Position numbers and translations under genes: made by a program
Assembly: GCA_028826165.1 (NCBI GenBank)
Contig: JAPDFW010000100.1
Span: forward strand, 124,001-188,000
Direction of reading: 5' to 3'
Length of the DNA: 64,000 nucleotides
DNA from: Anaeramoeba ignava BMAN
Lineage: Eukaryota; Protista; Anaeramoebae
Notes under the pieces: model-generated
What the model saw: the letters and a program-made list of their open reading frames with translations, nothing else
Databases searched by the model: none
What the model was told of the DNA's origin: nothing
Shown here: piece after piece, positions 2,976 to 61,566 of the stretch
How the letters are laid out: every line of letters begins with the position of its first letter
Numbering within the stretch: position 1 is the stretch's first letter

Positions 2976-3035
2976 TTTTGAAAAGAAAAATGAAAAAAAT
3001 GAAAAAAATAATTTTTGAATTTTAATTTTTAATTT

Positions 3036-23050: not shown

Positions 23051-23365
23051 AAATGAAAATGAAAAAGAAAAAGATTTTATAATTGAAAGAAAAGAAAAAC
23101 AATATAAATTCCCAAATTAATATTAATAATGAGAAGTGAATTATATCGAGGAATGTTTTTATCTGTAACAAATGATACTTCTAATAAAGTTACAGATTAT
23201 AGTGAATTAAGTAATAAATCATTTCAAATATTTGAATATTGGATTTATTCAAATCGAATCAAAACTGAAATCAAAATTAAAATTAAAATTAAGAATCAAA
23301 ATAGGAATTGATTATTTTCAATTAAATCAAACAAATCCAAAATTTATTTGATTTATTAATTTTAA
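23046..23365 (+). pseudogene. 3' fragment of an RCC1-BTB paralog
   Basis: LNENEKEKDFIIERKEKQYKFP, frameshift, then MRSELYRGMFLSVTNDTSNKVTDYSELSNKSFQIFEYWIYSN. Nearly identical to the C-terminus of 3036-5243, with no 5' part. Confidence 0.85.
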
Positions 23366-23640
23366 AATATGTGATCAAAAAAGAATAATTAATTGAAAAA
23401 TTTTTTGGAAAAGAAAAAATTGTGGAAAAACATATTTTTAATTAAAATTAAAATTAAAATTGAATTCAAAATTAAAATTAAGAATCAAAATAGGAATTGA
23501 TTATTTTCAATTAAATCAAACAAATCCAAAATTTATTTGATTTATTAAAATTAAAATATGTGATCAAAAAAGAATAATTAATTGAAAAATTTTTTGAAAA
23601 GAAAAAATTGTGGAAAAACATATTTTTAATTAAAATTAAG
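23270..23640. repeat. Tandem duplication of about 190 bp covering the pseudogene 3' end and flank
   Basis: AAGAATCAAAATAGGAATTGATTATTTTCAATTAAATCAAACAAATCC occurs at 23291 and 23480. Confidence 0.85.
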
Positions 23641-23767
23641 AAAATAAAAAAGATCATATTAAATAAAAATTAAAAAAAAACACGAAAGAAAATGATCAAT
23701 TAGAAAATTTAATTTTCTTAATTTTTCATTTTTCATTTTTCATTTTTCATTTTTTTTTACTTTTAAA

Positions 23768-31527: not shown

Positions 31528-31752
31528 TTTTTAAATTTTTTTAATTAAAAAGAAAAAAAGAAAAGAAGAAAAAAAAAATGAAAAAATAATTTTTCTCCTT
31601 TATTTTTAATTTAATTTAATAAAAGGAAGGCAAAAATTTTAAATAAAAAGAAAAAAAAGCAAAAAAAAATTTTTTAATTTTAATTTTTTTCATTTTTTTT
31701 CAATTTAATTTAATTGAAATTTAATTTTTAATTTTAAATTTTAATTTAAAAA

Positions 31753-37419: not shown

Positions 37420-37992
37420 TTACATCAAAAAACATTTTCCTTTTTTCTTTTCTTTTCCTTTTTGTTCTTTTTTTTCTTCTTTTTTCATTAAAAGAATACA
37501 AGATTCATAAAATAATTGTTTAATATTTTCTCCATTTTTAGCAGAAGTTTCAATAAATTTACAATTTAGTTTATTTGCTAATTCTTTTCCTTCTTCAGTT
37601 GAAACTTGTTTTTCTGTAATTAAATCATTTTTATTTCCAACTAAAATTTTTGGATAATTTTCATTTTTAAGGAAATTTTGAATTTTTTCATTCCAAAAAT
37701 TAATCTTTTTAAAACTATCTCTATCAATAACCGAATAAACTAAAATAAATCCTTGACTAAATTTAATCCATGATTCAATTATTGTACTATATTCATCTTC
37801 TCCTTCTGTATCAAGAATATTTATCATAATTTCTTTATCATCAACAATAATCTTTTTTAAAAATTCCCATTCATTTGCTGGATCATAATCATCAACAAAT
37901 CTATCATAAATCAATCTTTTTATTATTGATGTTTTTCCAACACTTCCTTTCCCAAATACTCCAAATTTTAATTTTAATTCTTTCTTTTCCAT
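37420..37992 (-). CDS. Ras-like small GTPase #1 (GKGSVGKT / YDPAN / DTEGE / CFLM)
   Basis: G1, G3, NKND, ETSAK, polybasic CaaX. Confidence 0.92.
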   Translation of the reverse strand: MEKKELKLKFGVFGKGSVGKTSIIKRLIYDRFVDDYDPANEWEFLKKIIVDDKEIMINILDTEGEDEYSTIIESWIKFSQGFILVYSVIDRDSFKKINFWNEKIQNFLKNENYPKILVGNKNDLITEKQVSTEEGKELANKLNCKFIETSAKNGENIKQLFYESCILLMKKEEKKEQKGKEKKKGKCFLM

Positions 37993-38082
37993 TTATTTTT
38001 AAAAATTAAAAAAAAAATGAAAAAATATTTTGATATTTTTTTTTTCAAAATTTAAAAAAAAAGAAAGAAATTATAAAAAGTT

Positions 38083-38664
38083 TCACATCAATAAACATCC
38101 TCCTTTTTTCTTTTCTTTTTCTTTTTCCTTCTCCTTTCTTTTTAAATAATCTTCATTTTCAAGTAAAACAAGAGCAGATTCATAAAATAATTGTTTAATA
38201 TTTTCTCCATTTTTAGCAGAAGTTTCAATATATTTACAATTTAAATGTTTTGCTAATTCTTTTCCTTCTTTTGTTTTCACAACTCTTTTTGTAAATAAAT
38301 CATTTTTATTTCCAATTAAAACTTTTGGATAATTTTTTGATTTAACATTTTGAATAATTTGATCATAAGTTAAAATTTCATTAAAAGTATTTTTATCATC
38401 TATTGAGTAAACCAAAACGAAAGAATCACAATATTTTGCCCAAGATCTTATATTATAAATAGTTTCTTCAGATGAAGCAGTATCTAATATACTTAATATA
38501 ATTTTTTTATCATTAAAATCTTTTTTTTTTCTGTATTCATCTATAAGTATTGGATCATAATCTTCAATAAATCTCTCATCAATAAATCTCATTGTTATTG
38601 TTGATTTCCCAACTCCTTGTTTTCCAATAACTCCAATTTTTAATTCCAATTCTTTATTATCCAT
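38083..38664 (-). CDS. Ras-like small GTPase #2 (GKQGVGKS / YDPIL / DTASS / CLLM)
   Basis: G-box motifs and CaaX in 193-aa ORF. Confidence 0.92.
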   Translation of the reverse strand: MDNKELELKIGVIGKQGVGKSTITMRFIDERFIEDYDPILIDEYRKKKDFNDKKIILSILDTASSEETIYNIRSWAKYCDSFVLVYSIDDKNTFNEILTYDQIIQNVKSKNYPKVLIGNKNDLFTKRVVKTKEGKELAKHLNCKYIETSAKNGENIKQLFYESALVLLENEDYLKRKEKEKEKEKKKGGCLLM

Positions 38665-38761
38665 TTATTTTAAAAATTAAAAAAATGAAAATTAAAAAAT
38701 TGAAAAATGAAAAGTTTTTTCTTAATTTTTGTTCCACTTTTTCTTTAAAAAAAAGCAAAAA

Positions 38762-39361
38762 TCACATCAATAAACAATTTCCTTTTTTCTTTTCTTTTTG
38801 TTTTTTTAATTCTTTCTTCTTTCTTTTTGCTTTTGCTTTTGGAATCGCAAGAATAGAAGATTCATAAAATAATTGATTAATATTTTCTCCATTTTTAGCA
38901 GAAGTTTCAATAAATTTACAATTTAATTGTTTTGCCAATTCTTTTCCTTCTTTTGTTTTAACTTCTCTTTTTGTAAATAAATCATTTTTATTCCCAATTA
39001 AAACTTTTGGATAATCTTCATTTTCCAAAAATTGTTGATTTTTTTTATGAATTTCAATAATTTCTTGGAAACTATTTCTATCATCTATTGAATAAACTAA
39101 AACAAAAGAATAACATTTTCTTGCTATCCTCTCATTTAAAATTTGATATTCTTCTTGTCCTGCTGTATCAAAAATCCATAAATGAATTTTCTCATTATTT
39201 ATATCCATTTTTTTAGAATCTTCATCCATACTTGGATCATAATAATCAATAAATCTTCCTTTTAAAAATCTTTTTGTTATTGATGTTTTTCCAACTCCTT
39301 CTTTTCCAAATATTGCAATTCTTAATTCTAAATAATCATTCCAATTTTTCTTTTTATTCAT
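38762..39361 (-). CDS. Ras-like small GTPase #3 (GKEGVGKT / YDPSM / DTAGQEEY / CLLM)
   Basis: Only copy with canonical DTAGQEEY. Confidence 0.93.
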   Translation of the reverse strand: MNKKKNWNDYLELRIAIFGKEGVGKTSITKRFLKGRFIDYYDPSMDEDSKKMDINNEKIHLWIFDTAGQEEYQILNERIARKCYSFVLVYSIDDRNSFQEIIEIHKKNQQFLENEDYPKVLIGNKNDLFTKREVKTKEGKELAKQLNCKFIETSAKNGENINQLFYESSILAIPKAKAKRKKKELKKQKEKKKGNCLLM

Positions 39362-39410
39362 TTTAAAAATAAATGAAAAAAAATGAAAAATTAAAAATCA
39401 AAAAAAAAAA

Positions 39411-39990
39411 TCACATCAATAAACATTTTCCTTTCTTTTTCTTTTGATTTTCATTTTGATTTTCATTATTTTTTGGAATTCCACAAAGAGTTGCTTCATA
39501 AAATAATTGATTAATATTTTCATTAGTTTTAGCAGAAGTTTCAATATATTTACAATTCAATTTACTTTGCTAATTCTTTTCCTTCTTTTGTTTTCACAAC
39601 TCTTTTTGTAAATAAATCACTTTTATTTCCAATTAAAATTTTTGGATGATTTTCTGATTTATATTTTTTAATAAAATTATCATATCGAAAAATTCTTTGG
39701 AAACTATCTCTATCATTTATTGAATAAACCAAAACAAATATTTCACACATTTCAACCCATGATTTTAAATATCCATCACTTTCTTCAGCTGCTGCTGTAT
39801 CAAGTATTCTTAATAATATTTTTTTATCATTAAAATCAATTTCTTTTCTAAATTCATCTTCAATAGTTGGATCATATTCTTCAATAAATATTTTATGTGT
39901 AAATCTTATTACTGATGTTGATTTTCCAACTCCTTCTTTTCCAAATAATCCTATTTTTAATTCTAAATCATATTCTTTATTTAAATTCAT
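39411..39990 (-). CDS. Ras-like small GTPase #4 (GKEGVGKS / YDPTI / DTAAA); +1 frameshift near 39565
   Basis: ATG at 39990 (MNLNKEYDLEL); the tail after the shift, [24 protein letters not shown]...KCLLM, matches #8. Confidence 0.85.
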
Positions 39991-40085
39991 TTCAAATAAA
40001 AAAATGAAAAGAAAAAATGAAAAATTAATTTTTTCAATTTTTTTATTCCATTTTTTAAAAAAATATAAAAATTGGAATATAAAAA

Positions 40086-40676
40086 TCACATTAATAAACA
40101 TTTTCCTTTCTTCTTCTTTTCATTTTCATTTTGATTTTGATTTTGATTTTCATTTTGATTTGGGATTTTAAAAGAAATAATTTCATAAAATAATTGATTA
40201 ATATTTTCTCCATTTTTAGCAGAAGTTTCAATAAATTTACAATTTAATTTATTTGCTAATTCTTTTCCTTCTTCAATAGAAATTGCTCTTTTCATTGTTA
40301 AATCACTTTTATTTCCAATTAAAACTTTTGGATGATTTTCTGATTTATATTTTTTAATAGAATTATAATAATGAAAAATTTCTTTATAACTATTTCTATC
40401 AGTAATTGAATAAACATAAATAAATAATTCATAACCTCTTGCCAAATTTTCGATATAAGGCCAATATTCTTGACAACCTGCTGTATCAAGTATTCTTAAT
40501 AATATTTTTTTATTATTAAAATCAATTTCTTTTCTAAATTCTTCTTCAATAGTTGGATCATATTCTTCAATAAATTTATCTTCTACAAATCTTATTGCTA
40601 TTGATGATTTCCCAACTGCTCCAGCTCCAAATAATCCTATTTTTAATTCTAAATCATATTCTTTATTTAAATTCAT
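40086..40676 (-). CDS. Ras-like small GTPase #5 (GAGAVGKS / YDPTI / DTAGC / CLLM)
   Basis: True ATG at 40676; G-boxes and CaaX. Confidence 0.92.
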   Translation of the reverse strand: MNLNKEYDLELKIGLFGAGAVGKSSIAIRFVEDKFIEEYDPTIEEEFRKEIDFNNKKILLRILDTAGCQEYWPYIENLARGYELFIYVYSITDRNSYKEIFHYYNSIKKYKSENHPKVLIGNKSDLTMKRAISIEEGKELANKLNCKFIETSAKNGENINQLFYEIISFKIPNQNENQNQNQNENEKKKKGKCLLM

Positions 40677-40773
40677 TTCAAATAAAAAAATGAAAAGAAA
40701 AAAATGAAAAATTAATTTTTTCAATTTTTTATTTCATTTTTTTAAAAAAAATATAAAAATTGAAATATAAAAA

Positions 40774-41359
40774 TCACATTAATAAACATTTTCCTTTCTT
40801 TTTCTTTTCATTTTGATTTTGATTTTGATTTTGATTTTGATTTTCTTTTTGAATTTTCAAAGAAATAATTTCATAAAATAATTGATTAATATTTTCATTA
40901 GTTTTAGCAGAAGTTTCAATAAATTTACAATTCAATTTATTTGCTAATTCTTTTCCTTCTTCAATAGAAACTTTTCTTTTCATTGTTAAATCACTTTTAT
41001 TTCCAATTAAAATTTTTGGATGATTTTCTTTAATTTTTTCAACTCTTTCAAAATAATAACGAAAAATGTCTTTATAACTTGATTTATCAGTAATTGAATA
41101 AACATAAATAAATAATTCATAATCTCTTGCCAAATTTTCAATATTAGGTAAATATTCTTCACAACATGCTGTATCAAGTATATTTAATAATATTTTTTTA
41201 TCATTTAAAATCAATTTCTTTTTTATATTCATCTTCAATAGTTGGATCATATAATTCAATAAATTTATTTTCTACAAATCTTATTGTTATTGTTGATTTT
41301 CCAACTCCTCCAGCTCCAAATAATACAATTTTTGTTTCAATATATTTATTAAAATTCAT
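40774..41359 (-). CDS. Ras-like small GTPase #6 (GAGGVGKS / YDPTI / DTACC); frameshift near 41208
   Basis: [22 protein letters not shown] from 41359 joins ORF 40774-41259 after an A-run shift. Confidence 0.85.
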
Positions 41360-41446
41360 TTCAAATAAAAAATGAAAAGAAAAAAATGAAAATTTTATTT
41401 TTATTCCACTTTTTTAAAAAAGAATATAAAAATTGGAATATAAAAA

Positions 41447-42036
41447 TCACATCAATAAACATTTTCCTTTCTTATTCTTCTTTTCATTTTGATTTTGATT
41501 TTGATTTTCATTTTCTTTTTGAATTTTCAAAGAAATAATTTGGGAAAATGATTGATTAATATTTTCTCCATTTTTAGCAGAAGTTTCAATAAATTTACAA
41601 TTCAATTCCTTTGCTAATTCTTTTCCTTCTTGAGTTTTAACTTTTCTTTTTGTTAATAAATCATTTTTATTTCCAATTAAAATTTTTGGATGATTTTTTT
41701 TAATTTTTTCAATTCTTTCAAAATAATAATGAAAAATTTCTTCATAACTTGATTTATCAGTAATTGAATAAATATAAATAAATAAATCATAATCTTTTGC
41801 CCAATTTTCAATATAAGGCCAATATTCTTCAGCACCAACTGTATCAAGTACTCTTAATAATATTTTTTTATTATTAAAATCAACTATTTTCCGATATTCA
41901 TCTTCAATAAATGGATCAAAATCTTCTTCAATAAATCTATTTTCAAAAAATCTCATTGTTATTGATGATTTTCCAACTCCTCTATTTCCAATTAATGCAA
42001 TTTTTGTTTCAATATATTTTTTAATTTTATTTTCAT
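41447..42036 (-). CDS. Ras-like small GTPase #7 (GNRGVGKS / FDPFI / DTVGA); frameshift just after ATG
   Basis: KYIETKIALIGNRGVGKSSITMRF continues into ORF 41447-41956. Confidence 0.85.
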
Positions 42037-42096
42037 TTAAAAATTAAATTTCAAATTAAAAAGAAAAAGAACTTTTTAAAAAAATAAAATCAAAAA

Positions 42097-42675
42097 TCAC
42101 ATCAATAAACATTTTCCTTTCTTTTTCTTTTGATTTTCATTTTGATTTTCATTATTTTTTGGAATTCCACAAAGAGTTGCTTCATAAAATAATTGATTAA
42201 TATTTTCATTAGTTTTAGCAGAAGTTTCAATATATTTGCAATTCAATTTATTTGCTAATTCTTTTCCTTCTTTTGTTTTAACAACTCTTTTTGTAAATAA
42301 ATCACTTTTATTTCCAATTAAAATTTTTGGATGATTTTCTTTTTTATATTTTTTAATATAATTACAATAATATAAAATTTCTTGAAAACTATCTCTATCA
42401 TTTATTGAATAAACCAAAACAAATATTTCACTCATTTCAACCCATGATTGTACATATGCACTTTCTTCAGCTGCTGCTGTATCAAGTATTCTTAATAATA
42501 TTATTTTATTATTTAAACAAATTTCTTTTCTATATTCATCTTCAATAGTTGGATCATATTCTTCCAAAAAAATATCCTGTATAAATCTTATTGTTATTGT
42601 TGATTTACCAACTCCTTGTTTTCCAAATAATCCAATTTTTAATTCTAAATAATCTTTATTCAAATCCAAATTCAT
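42097..42675 (-). CDS. Ras-like small GTPase #8 (GKQGVGKS / YDPTI / DTAAA / CLLM)
   Basis: 192-aa ORF with G-boxes and CaaX. Confidence 0.92.
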   Translation of the reverse strand: MNLDLNKDYLELKIGLFGKQGVGKSTITIRFIQDIFLEEYDPTIEDEYRKEICLNNKIILLRILDTAAAEESAYVQSWVEMSEIFVLVYSINDRDSFQEILYYCNYIKKYKKENHPKILIGNKSDLFTKRVVKTKEGKELANKLNCKYIETSAKTNENINQLFYEATLCGIPKNNENQNENQKKKKGKCLLM

Positions 42676-42774
42676 TTCAAAGATAAAAAAATGAAAAGAA
42701 AAAAATGAAAAATTAATTTTTGCAATTTTTTTATTCCATTTTTTTAAAATAAAAATAAAATTAGAATATAAAAA

Positions 42775-43371
42775 TCACATCAATAAACATTTTCCTTTCT
42801 TATTCTTATTTTGATTTTTCTTTTGATTTTTCTTTGGATTTTTTAATTCTCCAATTCCAAGAATAGAAGCTTCATAAAATAATTGATTAATATTTTCTAC
42901 ATTTTTAGCAGAAGTTTCAATAAATTTACAATTTAATTTATTTGCTAATTCTTTTCCTTCTTTTGTTTTAACAACTCTTTTTGTAAATAAATCATTTTTA
43001 TTTCCAATTAAAATTTTGCGATAATTTTCATTTCCATCAAGACATTTAGTTGCACTTTTATGAAAATCAATAATTCTTTCAAAACTATCTCTATCAGTAA
43101 TTGAATAAACATAAACAAAAACTTGCGAATATCTTGCCCATCTCCAAGATATTTGATAATATTCTTCACCACGTGCTGTATCAAGTGTATTTAATGATAT
43201 TTTTTTATCATTTAAATCAAATATTTTTCTATATTCTTCTTCAATAGTTGGATCATAATCTCCAATAAAAATATTTTGTATAAATCTTATTGTTATTGTT
43301 GATTTACCAACTCCTCCAGCTCCAAATAATCCAATTCTTAATTGTAATTCATTATCATTATCCAAATTCAT
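42775..43371 (-). CDS. Ras-like small GTPase #9 (GAGGVGKS / YDPTI / DTARG / CLLM)
   Basis: 198-aa ORF with G-boxes and CaaX. Confidence 0.92.
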   Translation of the reverse strand: MNLDNDNELQLRIGLFGAGGVGKSTITIRFIQNIFIGDYDPTIEEEYRKIFDLNDKKISLNTLDTARGEEYYQISWRWARYSQVFVYVYSITDRDSFERIIDFHKSATKCLDGNENYRKILIGNKNDLFTKRVVKTKEGKELANKLNCKFIETSAKNVENINQLFYEASILGIGELKNPKKNQKKNQNKNKKGKCLLM

Positions 43372-43466
43372 TTTAAAGATAAAAAAATGAAAAAGAAAAA
43401 AATGAAATTAATTTTTTGGATTTTTATTCCTCTTTTTAAAAAAAATATAAAATTGGAATATAAAAA

Positions 43467-44043
43467 TCACATTAATGAACATTTCCCTTTCTTATTCTCA
43501 TTTTCATTTTGATTTGGATTTTCTAATTCTTCAATTCCAAGAAGAGCAGATTCATAAAATAATTGTTGAATATTTTCTCCAGTTTTAGCAGAAGTTTCAA
43601 TAAATTTACAATTTAATTTATTTGCTAATTCTTTTCCTTCTTCAATAGAAATTGCTCTTTTCATTGTTAAATCACTTTTATTTCCAATTAAAATTTTTGG
43701 ATGATTTTTTTTAATTTTTTGGATCATTTTCTGGATTTTTTTCATTCTTTTAAAACTATCTCTATCACTAATTGAATAAACATAAACAACAACTTGTGAG
43801 TATCTTGCCCATCTCACATAAACTGAGTAAAATTCTTCAGCTGTTGCTGTATCAAGTATATTTAACATTATTTTTTTATCATTTAATTCAATTTCTTTTT
43901 TATATTCTTCTTCAATAGTTGGATCATATTCTTCAATAAAATGATTAGTTATAAATCTTATTGTTATTGTTGATTTACCAACTCCTTGTTTTCCAAATAA
44001 TCCGATTCTTAATATCCAAATTAAACAAATTATTCAATTCCAT
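43467..44043 (-). CDS. Ras-like small GTPase #10 (GKQGVGKS / YDPTI / DTATA / CSLM); frameshift near 44012
   Basis: [20 protein letters not shown] upstream continues into ORF 43467-43868; ATG at 44043 is out of frame. Confidence 0.83.
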
Positions 44044-44120
44044 TTTAAATTTTTGAAATGAAAAGAAAAAATAATTTTTCAAAAATTTAAAAAATAAAAA
44101 TAAAATTACAAAAAAAAAAA

Positions 44121-44733
44121 TCACATCAATAAACATTTTCCTTTCTTTTTCTTATTTTGATTCTTTTGATTCTCATTTTGATTTTGATTTTGATTATTTT
44201 TTAATTCTTCAATTCCAAGAAGAGAAGATTCATAAAATAATTGATTAAAATTTTCTCCAGTTTTAGCAGAAGTTTCAATAAATTTACAATTTAATTTCTT
44301 TGCTAATTCTTTTCCTTCTTTTGTTTTAACTTCTCTTTTTGTAAATAAATCACTTTTATTTCCAATTAAAATTTTTGGATAATCTTTTTTAATTTCATCA
44401 TTTCCAAAACATTTTTCAAATTTTTCATCAAGTTAATAATTATTTCAAAAAACTATTTCTATCAGTAATTGAATAAATATAAACAAAAACTATGCGAATA
44501 ACTTGAAATCTCCAATCAATAATATAATATTCTTCAGATCCTACAGTATCAAAAATATTTATTAATATTTTTTCATAATTTAAATCAACAATTTTTCTAT
44601 AAGCTTCTTCAATATTTGGTTCATAATCTTCAATAAAAATATTTCTTATAAATCTTCTTGTTATTGCTGTTTTTCCAACTCCTCCATTTCCAAATAATCC
44701 AATTCTTAATTGTAATTTATTTTTATTATTCAA
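44121..44733 (-). pseudogene. Ras-like small GTPase #11 (GNGGVGKT / YEPNI / DTVGS); TTG in place of ATG plus indels near 44430-44450
   Basis: Several lesions, but the 3' half ([12 protein letters not shown]...KCLLM) is intact; could still be sequencing error. Confidence 0.65.
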
Positions 44734-44812
44734 TTTTTTAAAGAAATGAAAAGAAAAATGAAATAAAATTTTTAAGAATTTTTAAAAAAATAAATTTAAT
44801 TCAAAAAAAAAA

Positions 44813-45391
44813 TCACATTAATAAACATTTTCCTTTCTTTTTCTTATTTTGATTCTTTTGATTTTCATTTTCTTTCTTTTTTAATTCTTCAAATGCAAGA
44901 AGAGAAGATTCATAAAATAATTGATTAATATTTTCATTAGTTTTAGCAGAAGTTTCAATAAATTTACAATTTATTTTCTTTGCTAATTCTTTTCCTTCTT
45001 TTGTTTTTACAACTCTTTTCATTGTTAAATCACTTTTATTTCCAATTAAAATTTTTGGATAATCTTCAACATCAAAAACTAATTGAATTTGTTTATGAAA
45101 TTCTAAAATATCTTCCAAAGTTGATTTGTCAAGAACAGAATAAATAAGAGCAAAAGAATGACATTCTCTAATCCAACGATCCATTAAATATGGGAATTCT
45201 TGATAAACAAATTTATGGATTTTTGTTGTAATAACTGCTTCATTTAAAATACAAATTCTGAAAAATTCATCATCAATTGGTGGATCATATTGTTCAGAAA
45301 AAGCTCCATTAATTATTCTTCTAACTATTGATGATTTTCCAACTCCTCCTCTTCCAATTATTCCAATACATACTTCTATTCCATTATCCAT
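44813..45391 (-). CDS. Ras-like protein #12 (GRGGVGKS / YDPPI / KFVYQ - G3 lost / CLLM)
   Basis: 192-aa ORF. Confidence 0.9.
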   Translation of the reverse strand: MDNGIEVCIGIIGRGGVGKSSIVRRIINGAFSEQYDPPIDDEFFRICILNEAVITTKIHKFVYQEFPYLMDRWIRECHSFALIYSVLDKSTLEDILEFHKQIQLVFDVEDYPKILIGNKSDLTMKRVVKTKEGKELAKKINCKFIETSAKTNENINQLFYESSLLAFEELKKKENENQKNQNKKKKGKCLLM

Positions 45392-45520
45392 TATTTTTCT
45401 TTTATTTATTTTGAATGAAAAAAATGAAAAAAATGAAAATGAAAATGAAAAAATTTTCTTTTTGATTCATTCAATAAATAATTTAAAAGATGAAAAAAAT
45501 CTCAAATGAAAGTTTTTTTT

Positions 45521-46120
45521 TCACATTAATAAACATTTTCCTTTTTTCTTTTTCATTTGATTTTGATTTTGATTTTGATTTTGATTTTGATTTTGATTTT
45601 GGATTTTTAAATTGAAAGATTCATAAAATAATTGATTAATATTTTCTCCAGTTTTAGCAGAAGTTTCAATAAATTTACAATTTATTTTCTTTGCTAATTC
45701 TTTTCCTTCTTTTGTTTTAATAACTCTTTTCATTGTTAAATCATTTTTATTTCCAATTAAAATTTTTGGATAATCTTCAACATTAAGAATATTTTTAATT
45801 CTTTTATAATGATAATTTAAAATTTGATTAAAACTATATTTATCAGTAATTGAATAAACTAAAAAGAAAATATTTGATTGTTTGCATAATTCTGGGAAAT
45901 AATCACCATATTCTTCTCGAGGTGTTGAATTAAAAATCAAAAAAGTTATTTTTTCATTATTGAAATTAAATATTTTGGAAAATTGTTCATCAATTAATGG
46001 AGAATATTCTTCATTAAATTTATTTTCGGTAAATTTTAATATTATTGATGATCTTCCAACTCCTCCACTTCCAAATAATCCAATTTTTACTTCATAATCA
46101 AATGATTTATTATTTTTCAT
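45521..46120 (-). CDS. Ras-like protein #13 (GSGGVGRS / YSPLI / NSTPR - G3 lost / CLLM)
   Basis: 199-aa ORF. Confidence 0.9.
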   Translation of the reverse strand: MKNNKSFDYEVKIGLFGSGGVGRSSIILKFTENKFNEEYSPLIDEQFSKIFNFNNEKITFLIFNSTPREEYGDYFPELCKQSNIFFLVYSITDKYSFNQILNYHYKRIKNILNVEDYPKILIGNKNDLTMKRVIKTKEGKELAKKINCKFIETSAKTGENINQLFYESFNLKIQNQNQNQNQNQNQNQMKKKKGKCLLM

Positions 46121-46214
46121 TTTTTTTTATTAAATCAAAAATGAAAAAAATGAAAACTTTTTTTTTTGATAATTATAAATTAAATCAAATAAATTGTTTT
46201 AAAATAAATTATTT

Positions 46215-46821
46215 TCACATTAATAAACATTTTCCTTTTTTCTTTTTCATTTGATTTTGATTTTGATTTTGATTTTGATTTTTGATTTTCTTTATTTTTT
46301 AATTCTTCAAATGCAAGAAGAGAAGATTCATAAAATAATTGATTAATATTTTCTCCAGTTTTAGCAGAAGTTTCAATATATTTACAATTTAAATTTCTTG
46401 CTAATTCTTTTCCTTGTTTAATTGAAATTTCTCTTTTCATTGTTAAATCACTTTTATTTCCAATTAAAATTTTTGGATAATCTTTTCTAATTTTTTTGAT
46501 TGAATAATTATGATAATTTAAAATTTCATCAAAACTATATTTATCAATAATTGAATAAATCAAAACAAAAACTTGTGAATATTCAACCCATCTTGGAAAT
46601 GGATCATAAATTTCTTGTGGATATGTTGTATCAAGTACTTTTAATAATATTTTTTTATCATTTAATTCAATTTCTTTTGTATATTCATCTTCAACATTTG
46701 GATCATATTCTTCAATAAACATATTATGTGTAAATTTTATTGTTATTGATGATTTCCCAACTCCTCCAGCTCCAAATATACCAATTCTTAAATCATAATC
46801 AAATGATTTATTATTTTCCAT
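46215..46821 (-). CDS. Ras-like small GTPase #14 (GAGGVGKS / YDPNV / DTTYP); frameshift in NQ tail
   Basis: [12 protein letters not shown] is present at 46215-46245 in a shifted frame. Confidence 0.87.
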
Positions 46822-46991
46822 TTTTTTTTATTAATTTAAAAATGAAAAAAATGAAAACTTTTTTTTTTAAAATTTTTTTTTTGATAATTAAAAATCAAAA
46901 CAAATAAATTGATTAAAACAAATTGAGAATAAGAAGATTGTCTGTTTAAAATATCATTTTACTTTTTCAAAAGTTTTTAAAAAACTTATTA

Positions 46992-47573
46992 TCACATTAA
47001 TAAACATTTTCCTTTTTTCTTTTTGTTTTGATTTTCTTTATTTTTTAATTCTTGAATTGCAAGAAGAGAAGCTTCATAAAATAATTGATTAAGATTTTCA
47101 CCAGTTTTAGCAGAAGTTTCAATATATTTACAATTTAATTGTTTTGCTAATTCTTTTCCTTTTTTTGTTTTAACTTCTCTTTTTGTAAATAAATCACTTT
47201 TATTTCCAATTAAAATTTTTGGATAATCTTGAACATTAAGAATATTTTTAATTCTTTTATAATGATAATTTAAAATTTCACCAAAACTATATTTATCAAT
47301 AATTGAATAAACTAAAACAAAAACTTGTGAAAATTCAACCCATCTTGGAAATGGATCACAAAATTCTTCTGGATATGCTGTATCAAGTACTTTTAATAAT
47401 ATTTTTTTATCATTTAATTCAATTTCTTTTATATATTCATCTTCAATAGTTGGATCATATTCTTCAATAAAAATATTATGTGTAAATTTTATTGTTATTG
47501 TTGATTTCCCAACTCCTCCAGCTCCAAATATACCAATTCTTAATTCATAATCAAATGATTTATTATTTTCCAT
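46992..47573 (-). CDS. Ras-like small GTPase #15 (GAGGVGKS / YDPTI / DTAYP / CLLM)
   Basis: 193-aa ORF. Confidence 0.92.
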   Translation of the reverse strand: MENNKSFDYELRIGIFGAGGVGKSTITIKFTHNIFIEEYDPTIEDEYIKEIELNDKKILLKVLDTAYPEEFCDPFPRWVEFSQVFVLVYSIIDKYSFGEILNYHYKRIKNILNVQDYPKILIGNKSDLFTKREVKTKKGKELAKQLNCKYIETSAKTGENLNQLFYEASLLAIQELKNKENQNKKKKGKCLLM

Positions 47574-47741
47574 TTTTTTTTATTAATTTAAAAATGAAAA
47601 AAATGAAAACTTTTTTTTAAAATTTTTTTTTTGATAATTATAAATTAAATCAAATAAATTGTTTAAAACAAATTGAGGATAAGAAGATTATCTGTTTAAA
47701 ATATCATTTTACTTTTTCAAAAGTTTTTAAAAAACTTATTA

Positions 47742-48323
47742 TCACATTAATAAACATTTTCCTTTTTTCTTTTTGTTTTGATTTTTAAATTTATTTGGAT
47801 TTTTCTTCATTTCTTCAAATGCAAGAATAGAAGCTTCATAAAATAATTGATGAATATTTTCTCCAGTTTTAGCAGAAGTTTCAATATATTTACAATTTAA
47901 TTGTTTTGCTAATTCTTTTCCTTGTTTAGTTTTAACTTCTCTTTTTGTAAATAAATCACTTTTATTTCCAATTAAAATTTTTGGATAATCTTGAACATTA
48001 AGGAAATGAAGAATTTTTTCATGAATTTCAAGAATTTCTTGAAAACTAGATTTATCAATAATTGAATAAATCAAAACAAAAACTTGTGAATATTCAACCC
48101 ATCTTTGAAATGGATCATAAATATCACGAGGATATGCAGTATCAAGTATACTTGTGTATAATTTTTGATCATTTAATTCATTTAATCTTCTATATTCATC
48201 TTCAATACATGGATCTTGATATTCAATAAAATGATTAGTTATATATTTAACTGCTATTATTGATTTCCCAACATCTACCTTTCCAAACAATCCTATATTG
48301 AAATATAATCCTTCGTCATTCAT
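47742..48323 (-). CDS. Ras-like small GTPase #16 (GKVDVGKS / QDPCI / DTAYP / CLLM)
   Basis: Likely ATG at 48323 (MNDEGLYFNIGLFG). Confidence 0.9.
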   Translation of the reverse strand: MNDEGLYFNIGLFGKVDVGKSIIAVKYITNHFIEYQDPCIEDEYRRLNELNDQKLYTSILDTAYPRDIYDPFQRWVEYSQVFVLIYSIIDKSSFQEILEIHEKILHFLNVQDYPKILIGNKSDLFTKREVKTKQGKELAKQLNCKYIETSAKTGENIHQLFYEASILAFEEMKKNPNKFKNQNKKKKGKCLLM

Positions 48324-48421
48324 TTTTGATTTCAAAAAAAGAAAAATGAAAAAAAATGAAAAAAATTTTTCTTTGATTTTTATTCTCAAAAATTTCAATC
48401 AAAATCCAAAAAAAAAAAAAA

Positions 48422-49027
48422 TTACATCAATAAACATTTTCCTTTTTTCTTATGATATTTATTTTGGTATTTATTTGGATTCTTTTCCAAATCTTGAATT
48501 GCAAGAATTATTGATTCATAAAATAATTGATGAACATTTTCTCCAGTTTTAGCAGAAGTTTCAATAAATTTACAATTTAATTTCTTTGCTAATTCTTTTC
48601 CTTGTTTACATGTGATTCGTCTTTTTGTAAATAAATCACTTTTATTTCCAATTAAAATTTTTGGATAATCTTTTTTATTTTCATTTTTTTCAAGAAGATA
48701 TCTTTTAATTAATTCATGAAAATAATTGATTTCTTTGAAACTAAATTTATTATCAACGGAATAAACCAAAACAAAAAAATCACTAAATTTCAAGCATCTT
48801 TTAATAATAATAGAATCCTCTTCACATCCTGCTGAATCAAGTATTTCGAATATTATTTTTTCATCATTTAATTCAATTTCTTTTCTGTAAGATTCTTCAA
48901 TAGTTGGATCGTATTCTTGAATAAATTTTCCTAATAAAAACCTAATTAAAATTGTTGATTTTCCAACTCCTCCACTTCCATAAAGAACAATTCTTAAGTG
49001 AGGATTGTTCTGTTTTTTATTATTCAT
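48422..49027 (-). CDS. Ras-like small GTPase #17 (GSGGVGKS / YDPTIEESY / DSAGC / CLLM)
   Basis: 201-aa ORF. Confidence 0.92.
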   Translation of the reverse strand: MNNKKQNNPHLRIVLYGSGGVGKSTILIRFLLGKFIQEYDPTIEESYRKEIELNDEKIIFEILDSAGCEEDSIIIKRCLKFSDFFVLVYSVDNKFSFKEINYFHELIKRYLLEKNENKKDYPKILIGNKSDLFTKRRITCKQGKELAKKLNCKFIETSAKTGENVHQLFYESIILAIQDLEKNPNKYQNKYHKKKGKCLLM

Positions 49028-49087
49028 TTTTAAAAAAACAAATAAGAAGAAAAATGAAAAATCAATTCAAAAAAAAAAAATCAAAAA

Positions 49088-49687
49088 TCACATCAAAAAA
49101 CATTTCCCTTTCTTATTTTTCTTTTTCTTTTTCTTTTGATTTAGATTTTCTTCTTCTATTGTTTTCAATCTTTCAATTTCAAGAAGAATTGTTTCATAAA
49201 ATAATTGATTAATATTTTCTCCAGTTTTAGCAGAAGTTTCAATAAATTTACAATTTAATTTCTTTGCTAATTCTTTTCCTTCTTTAATTGAAACTTCTCT
49301 TTTCATTGTTAAATCACTTTTATTTCCAATTAAAATTTTTGGATAATCTTTATCTTCAATATCAAGAATTCTTTTAATTCTTTCATCAAAATATTTAATT
49401 TCTTCAAAACTTTCTTTATAAGTAATAGAATAAATCAAAACAAAAATATTTGTTTCACGAACATAATTTGGAAATGGATCATAATGTTCTTCTTGGAGTG
49501 CTGTATCAAGAATAATGAATTTTATTTTCTTATCATTTAAATCATTTTTTTTTATATAAATATCAGTAATAGTTGGATCATAATCTTCAACAAAAATATC
49601 CTTTAAAAATCTTATTGTTATTGTTGATTTTCCAATTCCTCCACTTCCAAATATTCCTATTTTTATTTCTATTTCTTTATTTTCCAT
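49088..49687 (-). CDS. Ras-like small GTPase #18 (GSGGIGKS / YDPTI / DTALQ / CFLM)
   Basis: 199-aa ORF. Confidence 0.92.
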   Translation of the reverse strand: MENKEIEIKIGIFGSGGIGKSTITIRFLKDIFVEDYDPTITDIYIKKNDLNDKKIKFIILDTALQEEHYDPFPNYVRETNIFVLIYSITYKESFEEIKYFDERIKRILDIEDKDYPKILIGNKSDLTMKREVSIKEGKELAKKLNCKFIETSAKTGENINQLFYETILLEIERLKTIEEENLNQKKKKKKNKKGKCFLM

Positions 49688-49745
49688 TTTTGTTATTTAA
49701 AAAAATAAATAAGAAGAAAAATGAAAAAAATGAAAAAATCAAAAA

Positions 49746-50345
49746 TCACATCAAAAAACATTTTCCTTTCTTATTTTTCTTTTTCTTTTTCTTTTGATTT
49801 AGATTTTCTTCTTCTATTGTTTTCAATCTTTCAATTTCAAGAAGAATTGTTTCATAAAATAATTGATTAATATTTTCTCCAGTTTTAGCAGAAGTTTCAA
49901 TAAATTTACAATTTAATTTCTTTGCTAATTCTTTTCCTTGTTTAATTGAAACTTCTCTTTTCATTGTTAAATCACTTTTATTTCCAATTAAAATTTTTGG
50001 ATAATCTTTATCTTCAATATCAAGAATTCTTTTAATTCTTTCATTAAAATATTTAATATCTTCAAAACTTCTTTTATAAGTAATAGAATAAATCAAAACA
50101 AAAATATCTGTGTATTGCACATATCTTGGAAATGGATCATAATGTTCTTCTTGGGGTGCTGTATCAAGAATATAGAATAATATTTTCTTATTATTTAAAT
50201 CATTTTCTTTTTTATATTCATCTTCAATAGTTGGATCATAATCTTCAACAAAAATATCCTTTGAAAATCTTATTGCTATTGTTGATTTTCCAACTCCTCC
50301 ACTTCCAAATAATCCAACTTTTATTTTCATTTCTTTATTTTCCAT
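49746..50345 (-). CDS. Ras-like small GTPase #19 (GSGGVGKS / YDPTI / DTAPQ / CFLM)
   Basis: 199-aa ORF; 3' half essentially identical to #18. Confidence 0.92.
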   Translation of the reverse strand: MENKEMKIKVGLFGSGGVGKSTIAIRFSKDIFVEDYDPTIEDEYKKENDLNNKKILFYILDTAPQEEHYDPFPRYVQYTDIFVLIYSITYKRSFEDIKYFNERIKRILDIEDKDYPKILIGNKSDLTMKREVSIKQGKELAKKLNCKFIETSAKTGENINQLFYETILLEIERLKTIEEENLNQKKKKKKNKKGKCFLM

Positions 50346-50444
50346 TTTTATTATTTAAAAACAAAAAAATGAAAAAAAATGAAAAAAATGAAAAAAATGA
50401 AAAAAATGAAAAAAAATGAAAAAAATGAAAATTTTTTTTTTGAA

Positions 50445-51090
50445 TTAATAATAATTTGGAAATAAAATTAAATCAATTATTTAAAAAATGAGAAAATAAA
50501 GATTATTTGTTTAAAATTTAATTTTACTTTTTAAATTAATAATAATTTGGAAATAAAATTAAATCAATTATTTAAAAAATGAGAAAAATAAAGATTATTT
50601 GTTTAAAATTTAATTTTACTTTTTCTTGAATTAATAATAATTTGGAAATAAAATTAAATCAATTATTTAAAAAATGAGAAAATAAAGATTATTTGTTTAA
50701 AATTTGATTTTACTTTTTTTAAATTAATAATAATTTGGAAATAAAATTAAATCAATTATTTAAAAAATGAAAAATAAAGATTATTTGTTTAAAATTTAAT
50801 TTTACTTTTCTTGAATTAATAATAATTTGGAAATAAATCAAATCAATTATTTAAAAAATGAGAAAATAAAGATTATTTGTTTAAAATTTAATTTTACTTT
50901 TCTTAAATTAATAATAATTTAGAAATAAATTAAATCAATTATTTAAAAAATGAGAAAATAAAGATTATTTGTTTAAAATTTGATTTTACTTTTTTTAAAT
51001 TAATAATAATTTGGAAATAAATCAAATCAATTATTTAAAAAATGAAAAAATAAAGATTATTTGTTTAAAATTTGATTTTACTTTTTTTAA
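50445..51090. repeat. ~92-bp intergenic minisatellite, 7 copies
   Basis: TTAATAATAATTTGGAAATAAAATTAAATCAATTATTTAAAAAATGAGAAAATAAAGATTATTTGTTTAAAATT... at 50445, 50536, 50631, 50724, 50816, 50908 and 51000. Confidence 0.92.
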
Positions 51091-51102
51091 AAAAATCAAA
51101 AT

Positions 51103-51701
51103 TCACATTAATAAACATTTTCCTTTTTTCTTTTTCTTTTTCTTTTGATTTAGATTTTCTTCTTTTATTGTTTTCAATCTTTCAATTTCAAGAAGAATTG
51201 TTTCATAAAATATTTGATTAATATTTTCTCCATTTTTAGCAGAAGTTTCAATATATTTACAATTTAATTCTTTTGCTAATTTTTTTCCTTCTTTAATTGA
51301 AATTTCTCTTTTCATTGTTAAATCACTATTATTTCCAATTAAAACTTTTGGATAATCTTTATCTTCAATATTAAGAATTCTTTTAATTCTTTCATCAAAA
51401 TATTTAATATCTTCAAAGCTATGCTTATCAGTAATTGAATAAACTAAAACAAAAATATCTCTTCTTCTAATAGAACGTGAGAGTGTATCACCAAATTCTT
51501 CTTGATGAGATATATCAAAAATATTTAATTTTATTTTCTTATCATTTAAATTAATTTTATTTCTTTTTCATATTCTTCTTCAATAGTTGGATCATATTCT
51601 TCAATAAAAATATCTTGAATATATTTGATTACTATTCTTGATTTATAAGATCCATAACCTCCAACTATTCCAATTTTTATTTCCATTTCTTTATTTTCCA
51701 T
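51103..51701 (-). CDS. Ras-like pseudo-GTPase #20 (GGYGSYKS / YDPTI / DISHQ / NNSD / CLLM); frameshift near 51560
   Basis: Manual translation from ATG at 51701 (MENKEMEIKIGIVGGYGSYKSRIVIKY) joins ORF 51103-51315. Confidence 0.8.
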
Positions 51702-51760
51702 TTTTATTATTTAAAAACAAATATTTAAAAAAAATGAAAAAAATGAAAAAATGAAAAAAA

Positions 51761-52330
51761 TCACATTAATAAACATTTTCCTTTTTTCTTTTTCTTTTGA
51801 TTTTGATTTTTTAATTCAATTTCAAGAAGAATTGTTTCATAAAATATTTGATTAATATTTTCTCCAGTTTTAGCAGAAGTTTCAATAAATTTACAATTTA
51901 ATTCTTTTGCTAATTCTTTTCCTTTTTCAATTGAAATTTCTCTTTTCATTGTTAAATCACTTTTATTTCCAATTAAAACTTTTGGATAATCTTTATCTTC
52001 AATATCAAGAATGTATTTAATTTCTTTATCAAAATTTTTAATAACTTCAAAGCTATGCTTATCAGTAATAGAATAAATCAAAACAAAAATATTTGTTTGA
52101 CGAACATAATTTGGAAATGGATCATAACTGCTGTCTTGAGATGCTGTATCAAGAATATTGAATTTTATTTTCTTATTATTTAAATCATTTTTTTTTATAT
52201 AAATATCATCAATAGTTGGATCATAATCTTCAATAAAAATATTCTTTAAAAATCTAGTTGTTATTGTTGATTTACCAACTCCTCCAACTCCAAATAATCC
52301 AATTTTTATTTCTATTTCTTTATTTTCCAT
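51761..52330 (-). CDS. Ras-like small GTPase #21 (GVGGVGKS / YDPTI / DTASQ / CLLM)
   Basis: 189-aa ORF. Confidence 0.92.
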   Translation of the reverse strand: MENKEIEIKIGLFGVGGVGKSTITTRFLKNIFIEDYDPTIDDIYIKKNDLNNKKIKFNILDTASQDSSYDPFPNYVRQTNIFVLIYSITDKHSFEVIKNFDKEIKYILDIEDKDYPKVLIGNKSDLTMKREISIEKGKELAKELNCKFIETSAKTGENINQIFYETILLEIELKNQNQKKKKKGKCLLM

Positions 52331-52407
52331 TTTTATTATTTAAAAACAAAAAAATGAAAAAAATGAAAAAAATGAAAAAAAATGAAAAAAATGAAAATTT
52401 TTTTGAA

Positions 52408-53420
52408 TTAATAATAATTTGGAAATAAAATCAAATCAATTATTTAAAAAATGAAAAAATAAAGATTATTTGTTTAAAATTTTATTTTACTTTTCTTAAA
52501 TTAATAATAATTTGGAAATAAATCAAATCAATTATTTAAAAAATGAAAAAATAAAGATTATTTGTTTAAAATTTTATTTTACTTTTCTTGAATTAATAAT
52601 AATTTGGAAATAAATTAAATCAATTATTTAAAAAATGAAAAAAAGATTATTTGTTTAAAATTTAATTTTAATTTTTTTGAATTAATAATAATTTAGAAAT
52701 AAATTAAATCAATTATTTAAAAAATGAGAAAATAAAGATTATTTGTTTAAAATTTTATTTTAATTTTTTTGAATTAATAATAATTTGGAAATAAAATCAA
52801 ATCAATTATTTAAAAAATGAGAAAATAAAGATTATTTGTTTAAAATTTTATTTTACTTTTCTTGAATTAATAATAATTTGGAAATAAAATTAAATCAATT
52901 ATTTAAAAAATGAGAAAATAAAGATTATTTGTTTAAAATTTTATTTTACTTTTCTTGAATTAATAATAATTTAGAAATAAATTAAATCAATTATTTAAAA
53001 AATGAGAAAATAAAGATTATTTGTTTAAAATTTTATTTTAATTTTTTTGAATTAATAATAATTTGGAAATAAAATCAAATCAATTATTTAAAAAATGAGA
53101 AAATAAAAATTATTTGTTTAAAATTTAATTTTAATTTTTTTGAATTAATAATAATTTGGAAATAAAATCAAATCAATTATTTAAAAAATGAGAAAATAAG
53201 GATTATTTGTTTAAAATTTAATTTTAATTTTTTTGAATTAATAATAATTTAGAAATAAATTAAATCAATTATTTAAAAAATGAAAAATAAAGATTATTTG
53301 TTTAAAATTTTATTTTACTTTTCTTGAATTAATAATAATTTGGAAATAAAATAAATCAATTATTTAAAAAATGAAAAATAAAGATTATTTGTTTAAAATT
53401 TTATTTTACTTTTTTTAAAA
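52408..53420. repeat. ~92-bp intergenic minisatellite, 11 copies (same unit as 50445-51090)
   Basis: Unit starts at about 52408, 52501, 52593 ... 53329. Confidence 0.92.
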
Positions 53421-53430
53421 AAATCAAAAT

Positions 53431-54027
53431 TCACATTAATAAACATTTTCCTTTTTTCTTTTTCTTTTGATTTTGATTATTTTGATTTTCTTTTTGATTT
53501 TCTATTGTTTTCAATCTTTCAATTTCAAGAAGAATTGTTTCATAAAATATTTGATTAATATTTTCTCCAGTTTTAGCAGAAGTTTCAATAAATTTACAAT
53601 TTAATTCTTTTGCTAATTTTTTTCCTTTTTCAATTGAAACTTCTCTTTTTGTAAATAAATCACTTTTATTTCCAATTAAAACTTTTGGATAATTTTCACA
53701 ATCAAAAAATCTCTGAATTTTGTCATGAAAAAATTGAACTTCTTTCAAACTAAGTTTTCTAGTAATTGAATAAACTAAAACAAAAATATTTGATTCTTTG
53801 ATCCAATTTTCAATAATTAGAGAATATTCTTCATTTCCTGCAGTATCAATAATTGAAAAATTAATTTGTTCATCATTTAAAGTTATTCTTTTTCGAAAAA
53901 AATCTTCAATAGTTGGATCATATTCTGGAAGAAATCTTTCATCAATAAATTTTGTTACTATTGATGATTTTCCAACTCCTCCAGCTCCAAAAATACACAC
54001 TTTCACTTTTAATTCTTTATCATCCAT
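53431..54027 (-). CDS. Ras-like small GTPase #22 (GAGGVGKS / YDPTI / DTAGN / CLLM)
   Basis: 198-aa ORF. Confidence 0.92.
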   Translation of the reverse strand: MDDKELKVKVCIFGAGGVGKSSIVTKFIDERFLPEYDPTIEDFFRKRITLNDEQINFSIIDTAGNEEYSLIIENWIKESNIFVLVYSITRKLSLKEVQFFHDKIQRFFDCENYPKVLIGNKSDLFTKREVSIEKGKKLAKELNCKFIETSAKTGENINQIFYETILLEIERLKTIENQKENQNNQNQKKKKKGKCLLM

Positions 54028-54121
54028 TTTGATATTTTGATATTTTTTAAAAAGGAGAATAAAAAAATGAAAATGATTTTTTTTTTGAAAAATTTTTTAT
54101 TTTAGAAATTTGAAAAGAATT

Positions 54122-54775
54122 TCACATTAATAAACATTTTCCTTTCTTCTTTTGATTTTGATTATTTTGATTTTGATTTTGATTTTGATTATTTTGATTT
54201 TGATTATTTTGATTTTGATTATTTTGATTTTGATTATTTTGATTTTGATTTTGATTCTTTTTTAATTCTTCAAATTCAAGAAGTAAAGATTCATAAAATA
54301 TTTGATTAATATTTTCTCCAGTTTTAGCAGAAGTTTCAATATATTTACAATTTAATTCTCTTGCTAATTCTTTTCCTTCTTTACATGTGATTTGCCTTTT
54401 TGTAAATAAATCACTTTTATTTCCAATTAAAATTTTTGGATACTTTTTTTCTTCTTTTGAATAATCAGTAATTTTTTGATAAATAATTTTGATTTGATTA
54501 AAACTCAATCTATCAGTAATAGAATAAACCAAAATAATTCTATCACAATATTCAATAGAGTTATTAAATATAAATTCAGAATCATCACTTGTTGTATCAA
54601 GAATATAAATATAAATTGATTCATCATCTAAATCAAATTTTCTTCTAAATCTATTTCCCATTCCCATTTCTATTTCTTCAACAAATTCATTCATTAAAAA
54701 TCTCATTATCATTGATGATTTTCCAACACCTTTGAATCCAAACAAACCAATTCTTATTTCTAAATCATTATCCAT
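54122..54775 (-). CDS. Ras-like protein #23 (GFKGVGKS / effector loop replaced by IEMGMG / DTTSD / long NQ linker / CLLM)
   Basis: 217-aa ORF. Confidence 0.9.
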   Translation of the reverse strand: MDNDLEIRIGLFGFKGVGKSSMIMRFLMNEFVEEIEMGMGNRFRRKFDLDDESIYIYILDTTSDDSEFIFNNSIEYCDRIILVYSITDRLSFNQIKIIYQKITDYSKEEKKYPKILIGNKSDLFTKRQITCKEGKELARELNCKYIETSAKTGENINQIFYESLLLEFEELKKNQNQNQNNQNQNNQNQNNQNQNNQNQNQNQNNQNQKKKGKCLLM

Positions 54776-61429: not shown

Positions 61430-61566
61430 TAAATTTATTTTATTTTTAATTAATTAATTAATTAGAAAAAAATGAAAAAATGAAAAATGAAAAAATGAAA
61501 AAAATATTTTTTTTTTTAAATTTTTTTTAAATTTTTTTTTTCATTTTTTTCCTTTATTCTTTTTAA
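61430..61566. promoter_or_regulatory. Compact bidirectional promoter between TRAPPC10 and Miro, with TCATTTT motifs on both strands
   Basis: Divergent ATGs 137 bp apart; (AAAAATG)n on + near the TRAPPC10 start and TTTCATTTTTTT near the Miro start. Confidence 0.55.

Follow-up and report, generated by a model that had tools for sequence, protein, structure and literature searches.

In a 64,000-nucleotide stretch of the genome of Anaeramoeba ignava BMAN (assembly GCA_028826165.1, contig JAPDFW010000100.1, positions 124,001 to 188,000 of the forward strand; hereafter the window), we analysed a tandem array of 23 Ras-family units, u1 to u23. The units are intronless and lie head-to-tail on the minus strand at window positions 37420–54775 (Table 1). 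Six-frame motif scans detected 23 ETSAK and 23 CxxM-stop motifs, all on the minus strand within this interval, and neither motif in the rest of the window. These scans and the spacer lengths bear out the coordinates, copy number, strand, spacing and motifs given in a first-pass annotation of the same DNA. That annotation spoke of 23 genes; 23 units are indeed present, but only 16 are uninterrupted open reading frames (ORFs, 189–217 aa), the other seven (about 30%) being broken.

The units recur with a period of 649–778 bp, except for two longer ones of 1357 and 1670 bp, whose extra length is a 92–93-bp minisatellite. Spacers between coding regions measure 49–168 bp, with two exceptions at 757 and 1100 bp; when Ras remnants were sought in these two long spacers, none was found, only minisatellites. 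The presence of the same minisatellite upstream of both u19 and u21 suggests that a two-gene block and its satellite were duplicated together.

One or more TTTTCATTTTT elements occur 15–60 nt upstream of the start codon in every unit, broken units included. This element is 9-fold over-represented in the window (87 observed, 9.5 expected) and is also found upstream of unrelated genes, mostly at a short distance, on the coding strand, and often in tandem copies (for example at 1084–1166, 2986–3005, 23723–23754, 31687–31697 and 61468–61501). In the A. ignava genome it probably serves generally as an initiator or promoter element, which we take to resemble the TCAYW initiator of Trichomonas.

The A. 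ignava assembly comprises 42.8 Mb in 147 contigs, with about 20% G+C. The published genome, obtained from Nanopore and Illumina data, has 80.65% A+T and greatly expanded gene families, and its host harbours bacterial symbionts; the paper covers the Rabs, while 'Ras' does not occur in it as a whole word (PMC11550330). Our literature search returned no description of this array, and in a set of 5.8 billion sequences identity to array members did not go beyond about 50% for any protein outside this contig.

Assignment of the array genes to the Ras subfamily is supported by profile matches: the five copies tested matched Pfam Ras (PF00071) with E-values of 1e-33 to 1e-45 and scores of 116–154 bits, the curated cut-off being 21.6 bits. 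The nearest solved relatives were M-Ras, R-Ras2, Rap1 and K-Ras4B (E ~1e-35). For u12, the most divergent copy, the AlphaFold2 model had a mean predicted local distance difference test score of 86 and a predicted template modelling (TM) score of 0.82, with low confidence only around switch I and switch II. Its top Foldseek matches were Rap1b, K-Ras and DiRas1 (E 1e-18, target-normalised TM 0.9), and it superposed on Rap1 and K-Ras with a root-mean-square deviation of 1.7 Å. Even u12 is thus confidently predicted to retain the Ras fold.

An alignment of all 23 copies, with an X at each break, showed conservation of the core strands and of the nucleotide-binding motifs. SAK (G5) is kept in all 23 copies, NKxD (G4) in 22, K16 of the P-loop GxxxxGK[ST] (G1) in 22 and D57 in 21; the P-loop is degenerate only in pseudogene u20.

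The residues at positions 12, 35, 60 and 61, which by established biochemistry canonical Ras needs for GTP hydrolysis, the action of GTPase-activating proteins (GAPs) or the sensing of the gamma-phosphate, were much less well preserved. G12 is kept in 14 copies and replaced in nine. T35 (G2/switch I) is kept in 13, the others having A, I, S, F, N, P, L, C or G. G60 survives in seven copies and Q61 in five, so that the G3 motif DxxGQ is degenerate (lacking G60 or Q61) in 22 of 23; position 61 is occupied by 11 different residues and one alignment gap, and position 60 by nine residues. The sole copy with both G60 and Q61, u3, carries G12E and T35S, hence no copy has the full canonical set, and every copy lacks at least one residue of canonical GTP hydrolysis, GAP action or gamma-phosphate sensing. 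Given the losses of G60 or Q61 (22 copies), G12 (nine) and T35 (ten), the products most likely do not cycle, and the array proteins probably cannot hydrolyse GTP.

At the C-terminus, the K-rich CxLM tail pointed out in the first-pass annotation was found, as KK..GxCxLM, in all 23 copies. In the last of the windows compared along the gene, the proportion of synonymous differences (pS) was 0.40 and that of nonsynonymous differences (pN) 0.13. Synonymous sites of the tail thus vary while its protein sequence does not, implying that the tail is held by selection on the protein. As in K-Ras4B, a polybasic stretch followed by a CaaX box marks a protein for farnesylation and for association with acidic membranes. 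The host genome holds three loci of the prenyltransferase-beta type and ICMT matches above the cut-off, along with at least 70 RasGEF loci and dozens of RasGAP loci.

The main feature of the array is the contrast between a variable N-terminal half (N-half) and a constant C-terminal part. Both had been noticed in the first-pass annotation, and the descriptions proved accurate: the segments PK[IV]L[IV]GNKxDL and GKELAxxLNCK[FY]IETSAKxxENxxQ are present in 21 and 18 of the 23 units, respectively, and the variable part takes in P-loop residues 11–12, switch I and switch II. We define the C-core as the stretch from YPKILIGNK to QLFYE, at about nt 340–520 of the coding sequence (CDS; ~180 bp). DNA identity between copies averages 67% in the N-half (52–92%) and 89% in the C-core (84–99%).

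The annotation had regarded the constant part as a fixed, selected scaffold, a view that the synonymous sites did not support. At identical residues of the C-core, 201 synonymous codon differences were observed, as against 810 expected from the N-half rate (25%), and the constancy extends to dead copies: core identity to the live copies is 0.894 for broken units and 0.898 for intact ones. With a codon model that allows for extreme codon bias, we obtained a dN/dS ratio (ω) of 0.32 for the N-half (total dS 14.0, total dN 4.4) and of 0.24 for the C-core (total dS 3.6, total dN 0.84). The history of the C-core is about 4–5-fold shallower than that of the N-half, ω being similar in both. A uniform dN/dS along the gene had been named in the annotation as a result that would speak against its reading, and essentially uniform is what we found, with dS 4-fold apart. 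The contrast between the two parts is mainly a difference in age.

Several lines of evidence indicate that the two parts have separate histories. Across pairs of copies, N-half and C-core divergence are uncorrelated (rho 0.08), and the nearest relative usually differs between the parts; u12, for instance, reaches 61% identity with its closest copy over the N-half, whereas its core matches that of u13 at 96%. The maximum-likelihood (ML) trees of the N-half and the C-core reject each other (approximately unbiased test, p = 2.6e-4 and 1e-8), and the pairwise homoplasy index test for recombination, applied to the whole CDS, gave p = 0.002. In 231 of 253 pairs the longest identical run falls in CDS nt 340–520. 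Non-neighbouring copies share runs of up to 111 nt (u5 and u10, with 71% N-half identity), and at a dimorphic core segment FT/TM and VKTK/ISI are found in every combination, as a mosaic. Core constancy at the DNA level, conflicting trees, mosaics and fresh cores in dead copies together point to recurrent short-tract gene conversion, to which the constancy of the C-core is mainly due.

Comparison with relatives in the same genome helps to place this pattern. In a phylogeny that included canonical Ras and Rap sequences, the 16 intact copies form one separate clade (SH-aLRT, a Shimodaira–Hasegawa-like likelihood ratio support, 100) on a long stem, apart from canonical Ras, Rap and a second tandem Ras-like array on contig C60. 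Four near-identical canonical Ras genes keep GGGGVGKS, YDPTIEDSY and DTAGQEE and end in the tail KKKRKLFGKCSLM, from which it follows that the array inherited its tail type from ordinary Ras. These four copies, of 196 aa and differing by 1–3 residues, are dispersed (C100:101189, C55:389352, C134:116646 and C81:259962).

The second array (C60:774952–794230) contains at least 12 intact copies plus fragments, likewise intronless and forming a species-specific clade. In its members D[YF]YYxDEW replaces switch II, and the tail, rich in S and N, lacks a polybasic stretch and has CLIF as its last residues. Its N- and C-halves share one history (rho 0.71), with synonymous difference rates of 0.083 and 0.065, meaning that the split pattern belongs to the array described here and not to the genome at large.

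We also asked what keeps the reading frames intact. Frameshifts are present in u4, u6, u11, u14 and u20, and the start codon is lost in u7 and u10. When neutral evolution was simulated along terminal branches alone, none of nine long-branch copies kept its N-half open in more than 1.1% of trials, which gives a joint neutral probability of ~1e-27 that all nine stay open. Selection has therefore kept these reading frames. In an exact-match look-up aimed at EukProt transcriptome-derived proteins as a proxy for expression, 11 of 14 array proteins were found solely in NCBI/UniRef, and 3 of the 14 had no exact sequence in the collection; control Ras genes of other contigs were likewise found solely in NCBI/UniRef, so that the look-up did not set the array apart from them.

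Taken together, these data are probably accounted for by a lineage-specific, tandem birth-and-death expansion of one Ras-subfamily paralogue, with segmental gene conversion and membrane-anchored, non-cycling products. Repeated local duplication of that paralogue, each unit with an intronless ORF behind a promoter-proximal TTTTCATTTTT element of its own, would have been accompanied by birth and death, leaving 16 live and seven broken copies. Short-tract conversion keeps homogenising the ~180-bp 3' core (CDS nt ~340–520) in all copies, dead ones included. The N-halves escape it; purifying selection on them is moderately relaxed to the same degree (ω ~0.3), and their divergence is about 4-fold deeper. 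The products keep the Ras fold, the P-loop GK[ST], D57, NKxD, SAK and the polybasic-CxLM tail. They are predicted to be farnesylated, anchored at the membrane by the polybasic stretch, nucleotide-bound, non-cycling and GAP-insensitive, differing from one another in their effector-side surfaces; nucleotide binding without hydrolysis, lipidation, location and cellular role are all read here from the sequence.

Some observations weigh against this account. The dS estimates are fragile, with 92% of third positions being A or T. The single-lesion 'pseudogenes' u4, u6 and u14 could be errors of the Nanopore-plus-Illumina assembly; the lesion of u4 is an inserted G that is not in a homopolymer, and u11 and u20 have several lesions each. 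Rap functions without Q61, its GAP supplying the catalytic residue, so absence of Q61 by itself is no proof that a GTPase is dead. Finally, when site models M1a and M2a were compared by a home-written test over the whole N-half on a single tree, twice the log-likelihood difference (2ΔlnL) was 40 (p = 2e-9), with 12.5% of N-half sites assigned ω ~2.9, including residue 11, G60, Q61 and switch II. Some diversifying selection in the N-half may thus have occurred.

This last result bears on an alternative that we consider unlikely, namely that the repertoire is kept diverse by selection, a fixed anchor and scaffold displaying many switch surfaces. In that case conversion would preserve the constant part, whereas selection would oppose it in the variable part; speculatively, the products might sense bacterial enzymes that target Ras or act as decoys for them, or they might form a membrane-identity code. 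The M2a result was unchanged with the 16 intact copies alone and had no counterpart in the C-core control (2ΔlnL 0); the ORFs held open, the second array without a sharp N/C contrast and the bacterial symbionts with which the host lives (PMC11550330) also fit such a scenario. However, when three N-half segments were given their own trees, 2ΔlnL fell to 6.4, 2.4 and 0.0, albeit at a cost in statistical power. Recombination, demonstrated in this array, is known to inflate M1a/M2a site tests, and with the signal so reduced under segment-specific trees we did not accept the M2a positive selection as robust.

Pairwise estimates agree with this caution. A Nei–Gojobori pN/pS of ~1.1 in the N-half was discarded as uninformative, because pS (~0.30) was near saturation with 92% A/T third positions, and was replaced by codon-frequency-aware ML. 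By the latter, N-half ω in the 14 closest pairs ranged from 0.18 to 0.82, never exceeding 1. For switch regions set in advance (residues 11–13, 30–40 and 58–76), six phylogenetically independent close pairs gave an ω of 0.47, which is below 1 (p = 0.0016) and no different from the 0.35 found elsewhere (p = 0.065). The near uniformity of ω along the gene and the 30% of broken copies speak in the same direction. What stands of the 'diversified repertoire' of the first-pass annotation is the Ras subfamily, the universal tail and the variable switches. The pattern itself is real and goes beyond chance, but its architecture is best explained by birth and death, conversion and relaxed purifying selection on a Ras paralogue that has given up the canonical switch; a library of surfaces and a scaffold that are both products of selection account for it less well.

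The opposite proposal, that the array consists largely of functionless duplicates, a decaying and mostly silent by-product of unequal crossing-over, is distinctly unlikely in our view. One or a few live copies, acting as donors in conversion, would then be the sole source of any apparent conservation. Such decay would be in keeping with the seven broken copies, with the near-general absence of the catalytic residues and with the fact that about half of N-half sites fit ω = 1 (the remainder ~0.2), and deletion of the minor Ras genes RasX, RasY or RasZ in Dictyostelium caused no obvious phenotype (PMC6304742). It is difficult to reconcile with nine long-branch N-halves remaining open against the neutral odds given above, with core beta-strands and a P-loop that are still conserved, with an overall ω of 0.3 rather than 1, or with a tail constrained at the protein level.

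We would also treat as decidedly improbable a bolder scheme in which about 16 farnesylated, GTPase-dead Ras proteins have their P-loop and switch II diversity kept by selection, for example for sensing or soaking up bacterial effectors that act on Ras switches, or for marking different phagosome or symbiosome membranes. If this were true, the homogenised 3' core would be a common docking module, or else a handle at the nucleotide level through which the copies are co-regulated, for instance by being expressed one at a time.

Mis-assembly of a repeat, inflating fewer real loci into an array, might be suspected in a repetitive region of a long-read-based assembly, but is highly improbable here, as the copies are too distinct (N-halves differing by 8–48%, with indels, spacers and linker lengths particular to each) to be an inflation or collapse of identical repeats.

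Birth and death with segmental conversion, the explanation we favour, can be set against known systems. The array proteins share with canonical Ras proteins (K-Ras4B, M-Ras, R-Ras2, Rap1) the fold and the G1, G4 and G5 motifs (TM ~0.9, E ~1e-35), and with K-Ras4B a hypervariable region ending in a polybasic stretch and a CaaX box with final M. Unlike the single, conserved canonical genes, they come in 23 clustered, species-specific copies, with DxxGQ, G12 and T35 lost to the extent given above. Rnd, RhoH, kappaB-Ras and RGK, pseudoGTPase-like small GTPases that bind nucleotide but are catalytically inactive, keep the guanine motifs and lack the catalytic Gln and/or glycines 12 and 60; the prenylated ones act as constitutive, non-cycling membrane proteins. 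The array, known from its sequence, resembles them in this combination, but they are single conserved genes with fixed substitutions, whereas the array varies, with 11 residues at position 61 and nine at position 60.

The RasU–RasZ genes of Dictyostelium are likewise extra, somewhat divergent Ras genes of a phagotrophic amoeba; the array differs in being far larger, confined to one locus and marked by near-universal loss of switch II residues and segmental concerted evolution. The C60 array is also tandem, intronless and species-specific, with a CaaX tail and a replaced switch II, but its CLIF tail has no polybasic stretch and it has no separate homogenised block.

A similar contrast between gene parts is seen in major histocompatibility complex (MHC) genes and, with conserved C-termini, in Giardia variant surface proteins (VSPs) and trypanosome variant surface glycoproteins (VSGs), where concerted evolution is partial, the constant part being homogenised and the variable part escaping conversion. 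Like the array, these families have variable and constant parts, mosaic tracts, pseudogenes that take part in conversion, and a tandem arrangement. Their variable parts are under robust positive selection and face the cell exterior. The array, by contrast, has ω below 1, a signal of positive selection that is not robust, and products predicted to be cytosolic and lipid-anchored.

Thus the array offers a clean natural case of one gene in two evolutionary modes, a ~180-bp block being converted while the rest diverges freely. It also calls for caution: diversifying selection is not needed to produce the look of a constant scaffold with a variable surface, nor even for a site-model test to come out significant. 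Ras joins the gene families that are greatly expanded in Anaeramoeba, and the array amounts to a natural series of about 16 variants, altered at Ras positions 12, 35, 60 and 61 of a single scaffold, that could show what use a phagotrophic, symbiont-bearing anaerobe makes of a non-switching, membrane-anchored Ras.

Table 1. Units and minisatellites of the Ras-family array (positions in the 64-kb window).
Feature	Position	Strand	Description
u1	37420..37992	-	intact Ras-like ORF, 190 aa; G13S, T35A, Q61E; tail CFLM
u2	38083..38664	-	intact, 193 aa; G12Q, T35I; switch II DTASSEE
u3	38762..39361	-	intact, 199 aa; sole copy with DTAGQEE; G12E, T35S
u4	39411..39990	-	broken, 1-nt insertion near 39565; nearest copy u8
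u5	40086..40676	-	intact, 196 aa from ATG; Q61C
u6	40774..41359	-	broken, frameshift near 41206
u7	41447..42022	-	broken, no start codon upstream of P-loop; otherwise a single open frame
u8	42097..42675	-	intact, 192 aa; G12Q; switch II DTAAAEE
u9	42775..43371	-	intact, 198 aa; switch II DTARGEE
u10	43467..44033	-	broken, start codon lost, stop upstream of P-loop; tail CSLM
u11	44121..44721	-	pseudogene, several indels; C-core perfect, mosaic (part u15-like, part u18-like)
u12	44813..45391	-	intact, 192 aa; most divergent copy; HKFVY-QE replaces DTAGQE
u13	45521..46120	-	intact, 199 aa; K16R, D57N
u14	46215..46821	-	frameshift within 5-nt repeat of tail linker; CLLM tail out of frame
u15	46992..47573	-	intact, 193 aa; switch II DTAYPEE
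u16	47742..48323	-	intact, 193 aa from ATG; G12V, G13D, T35C
u17	48422..49027	-	intact, 201 aa; Q61C
u18	49088..49687	-	intact, 199 aa; G60L; tail CFLM
u19	49746..50345	-	intact, 199 aa; G60P; 175-nt perfect run in common with u18
Minisatellite, 92 bp	50435..51091	.	7.1 copies, 95% matches; spacer upstream of u19
u20	51103..51701	-	pseudogene; degenerate P-loop, indels, NKxD changed to NNxD
u21	51761..52330	-	intact, 189 aa; G60S
Minisatellite, 93 bp	52398..53416	.	11.1 copies, 95% matches; same family as the 92-bp one; upstream of u21
u22	53431..54027	-	intact, 198 aa; Q61N
u23	54122..54775	-	intact, 217 aa; IEMGMGNRF in place of switch I; long NQ linker

Outside this locus, we noted further clusters of Ras-superfamily matches at C59:153–168 kb, C81:344–352 kb, C61:204–220 kb and C60:1204–1208 kb; some of these matches lie in open frames of 340–415 aa and may represent GTPase fusion proteins. 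An unrelated ORF of 323 aa lies within the C60 array.

The neighbours of the array on its two sides are an alpha-actinin gene and a TRAPPC10-like gene. Upstream of the array, the window contains a gene for an RCC1-BTB protein (3036–5243) and a BEACH/neurobeachin-like gene encoding 2534 aa (7522–15126). At 18001–24000 lies a 6-kb stretch of just 4–10% G+C in which no ORF reaches 150 aa. The alpha-actinin-like gene, with CH domains, spectrin repeats and EF-hands, appears as three successive or overlapping ORFs at 31753–37241, which may reflect introns or frameshifts, and it has paralogues on other contigs that are 77–91% identical.

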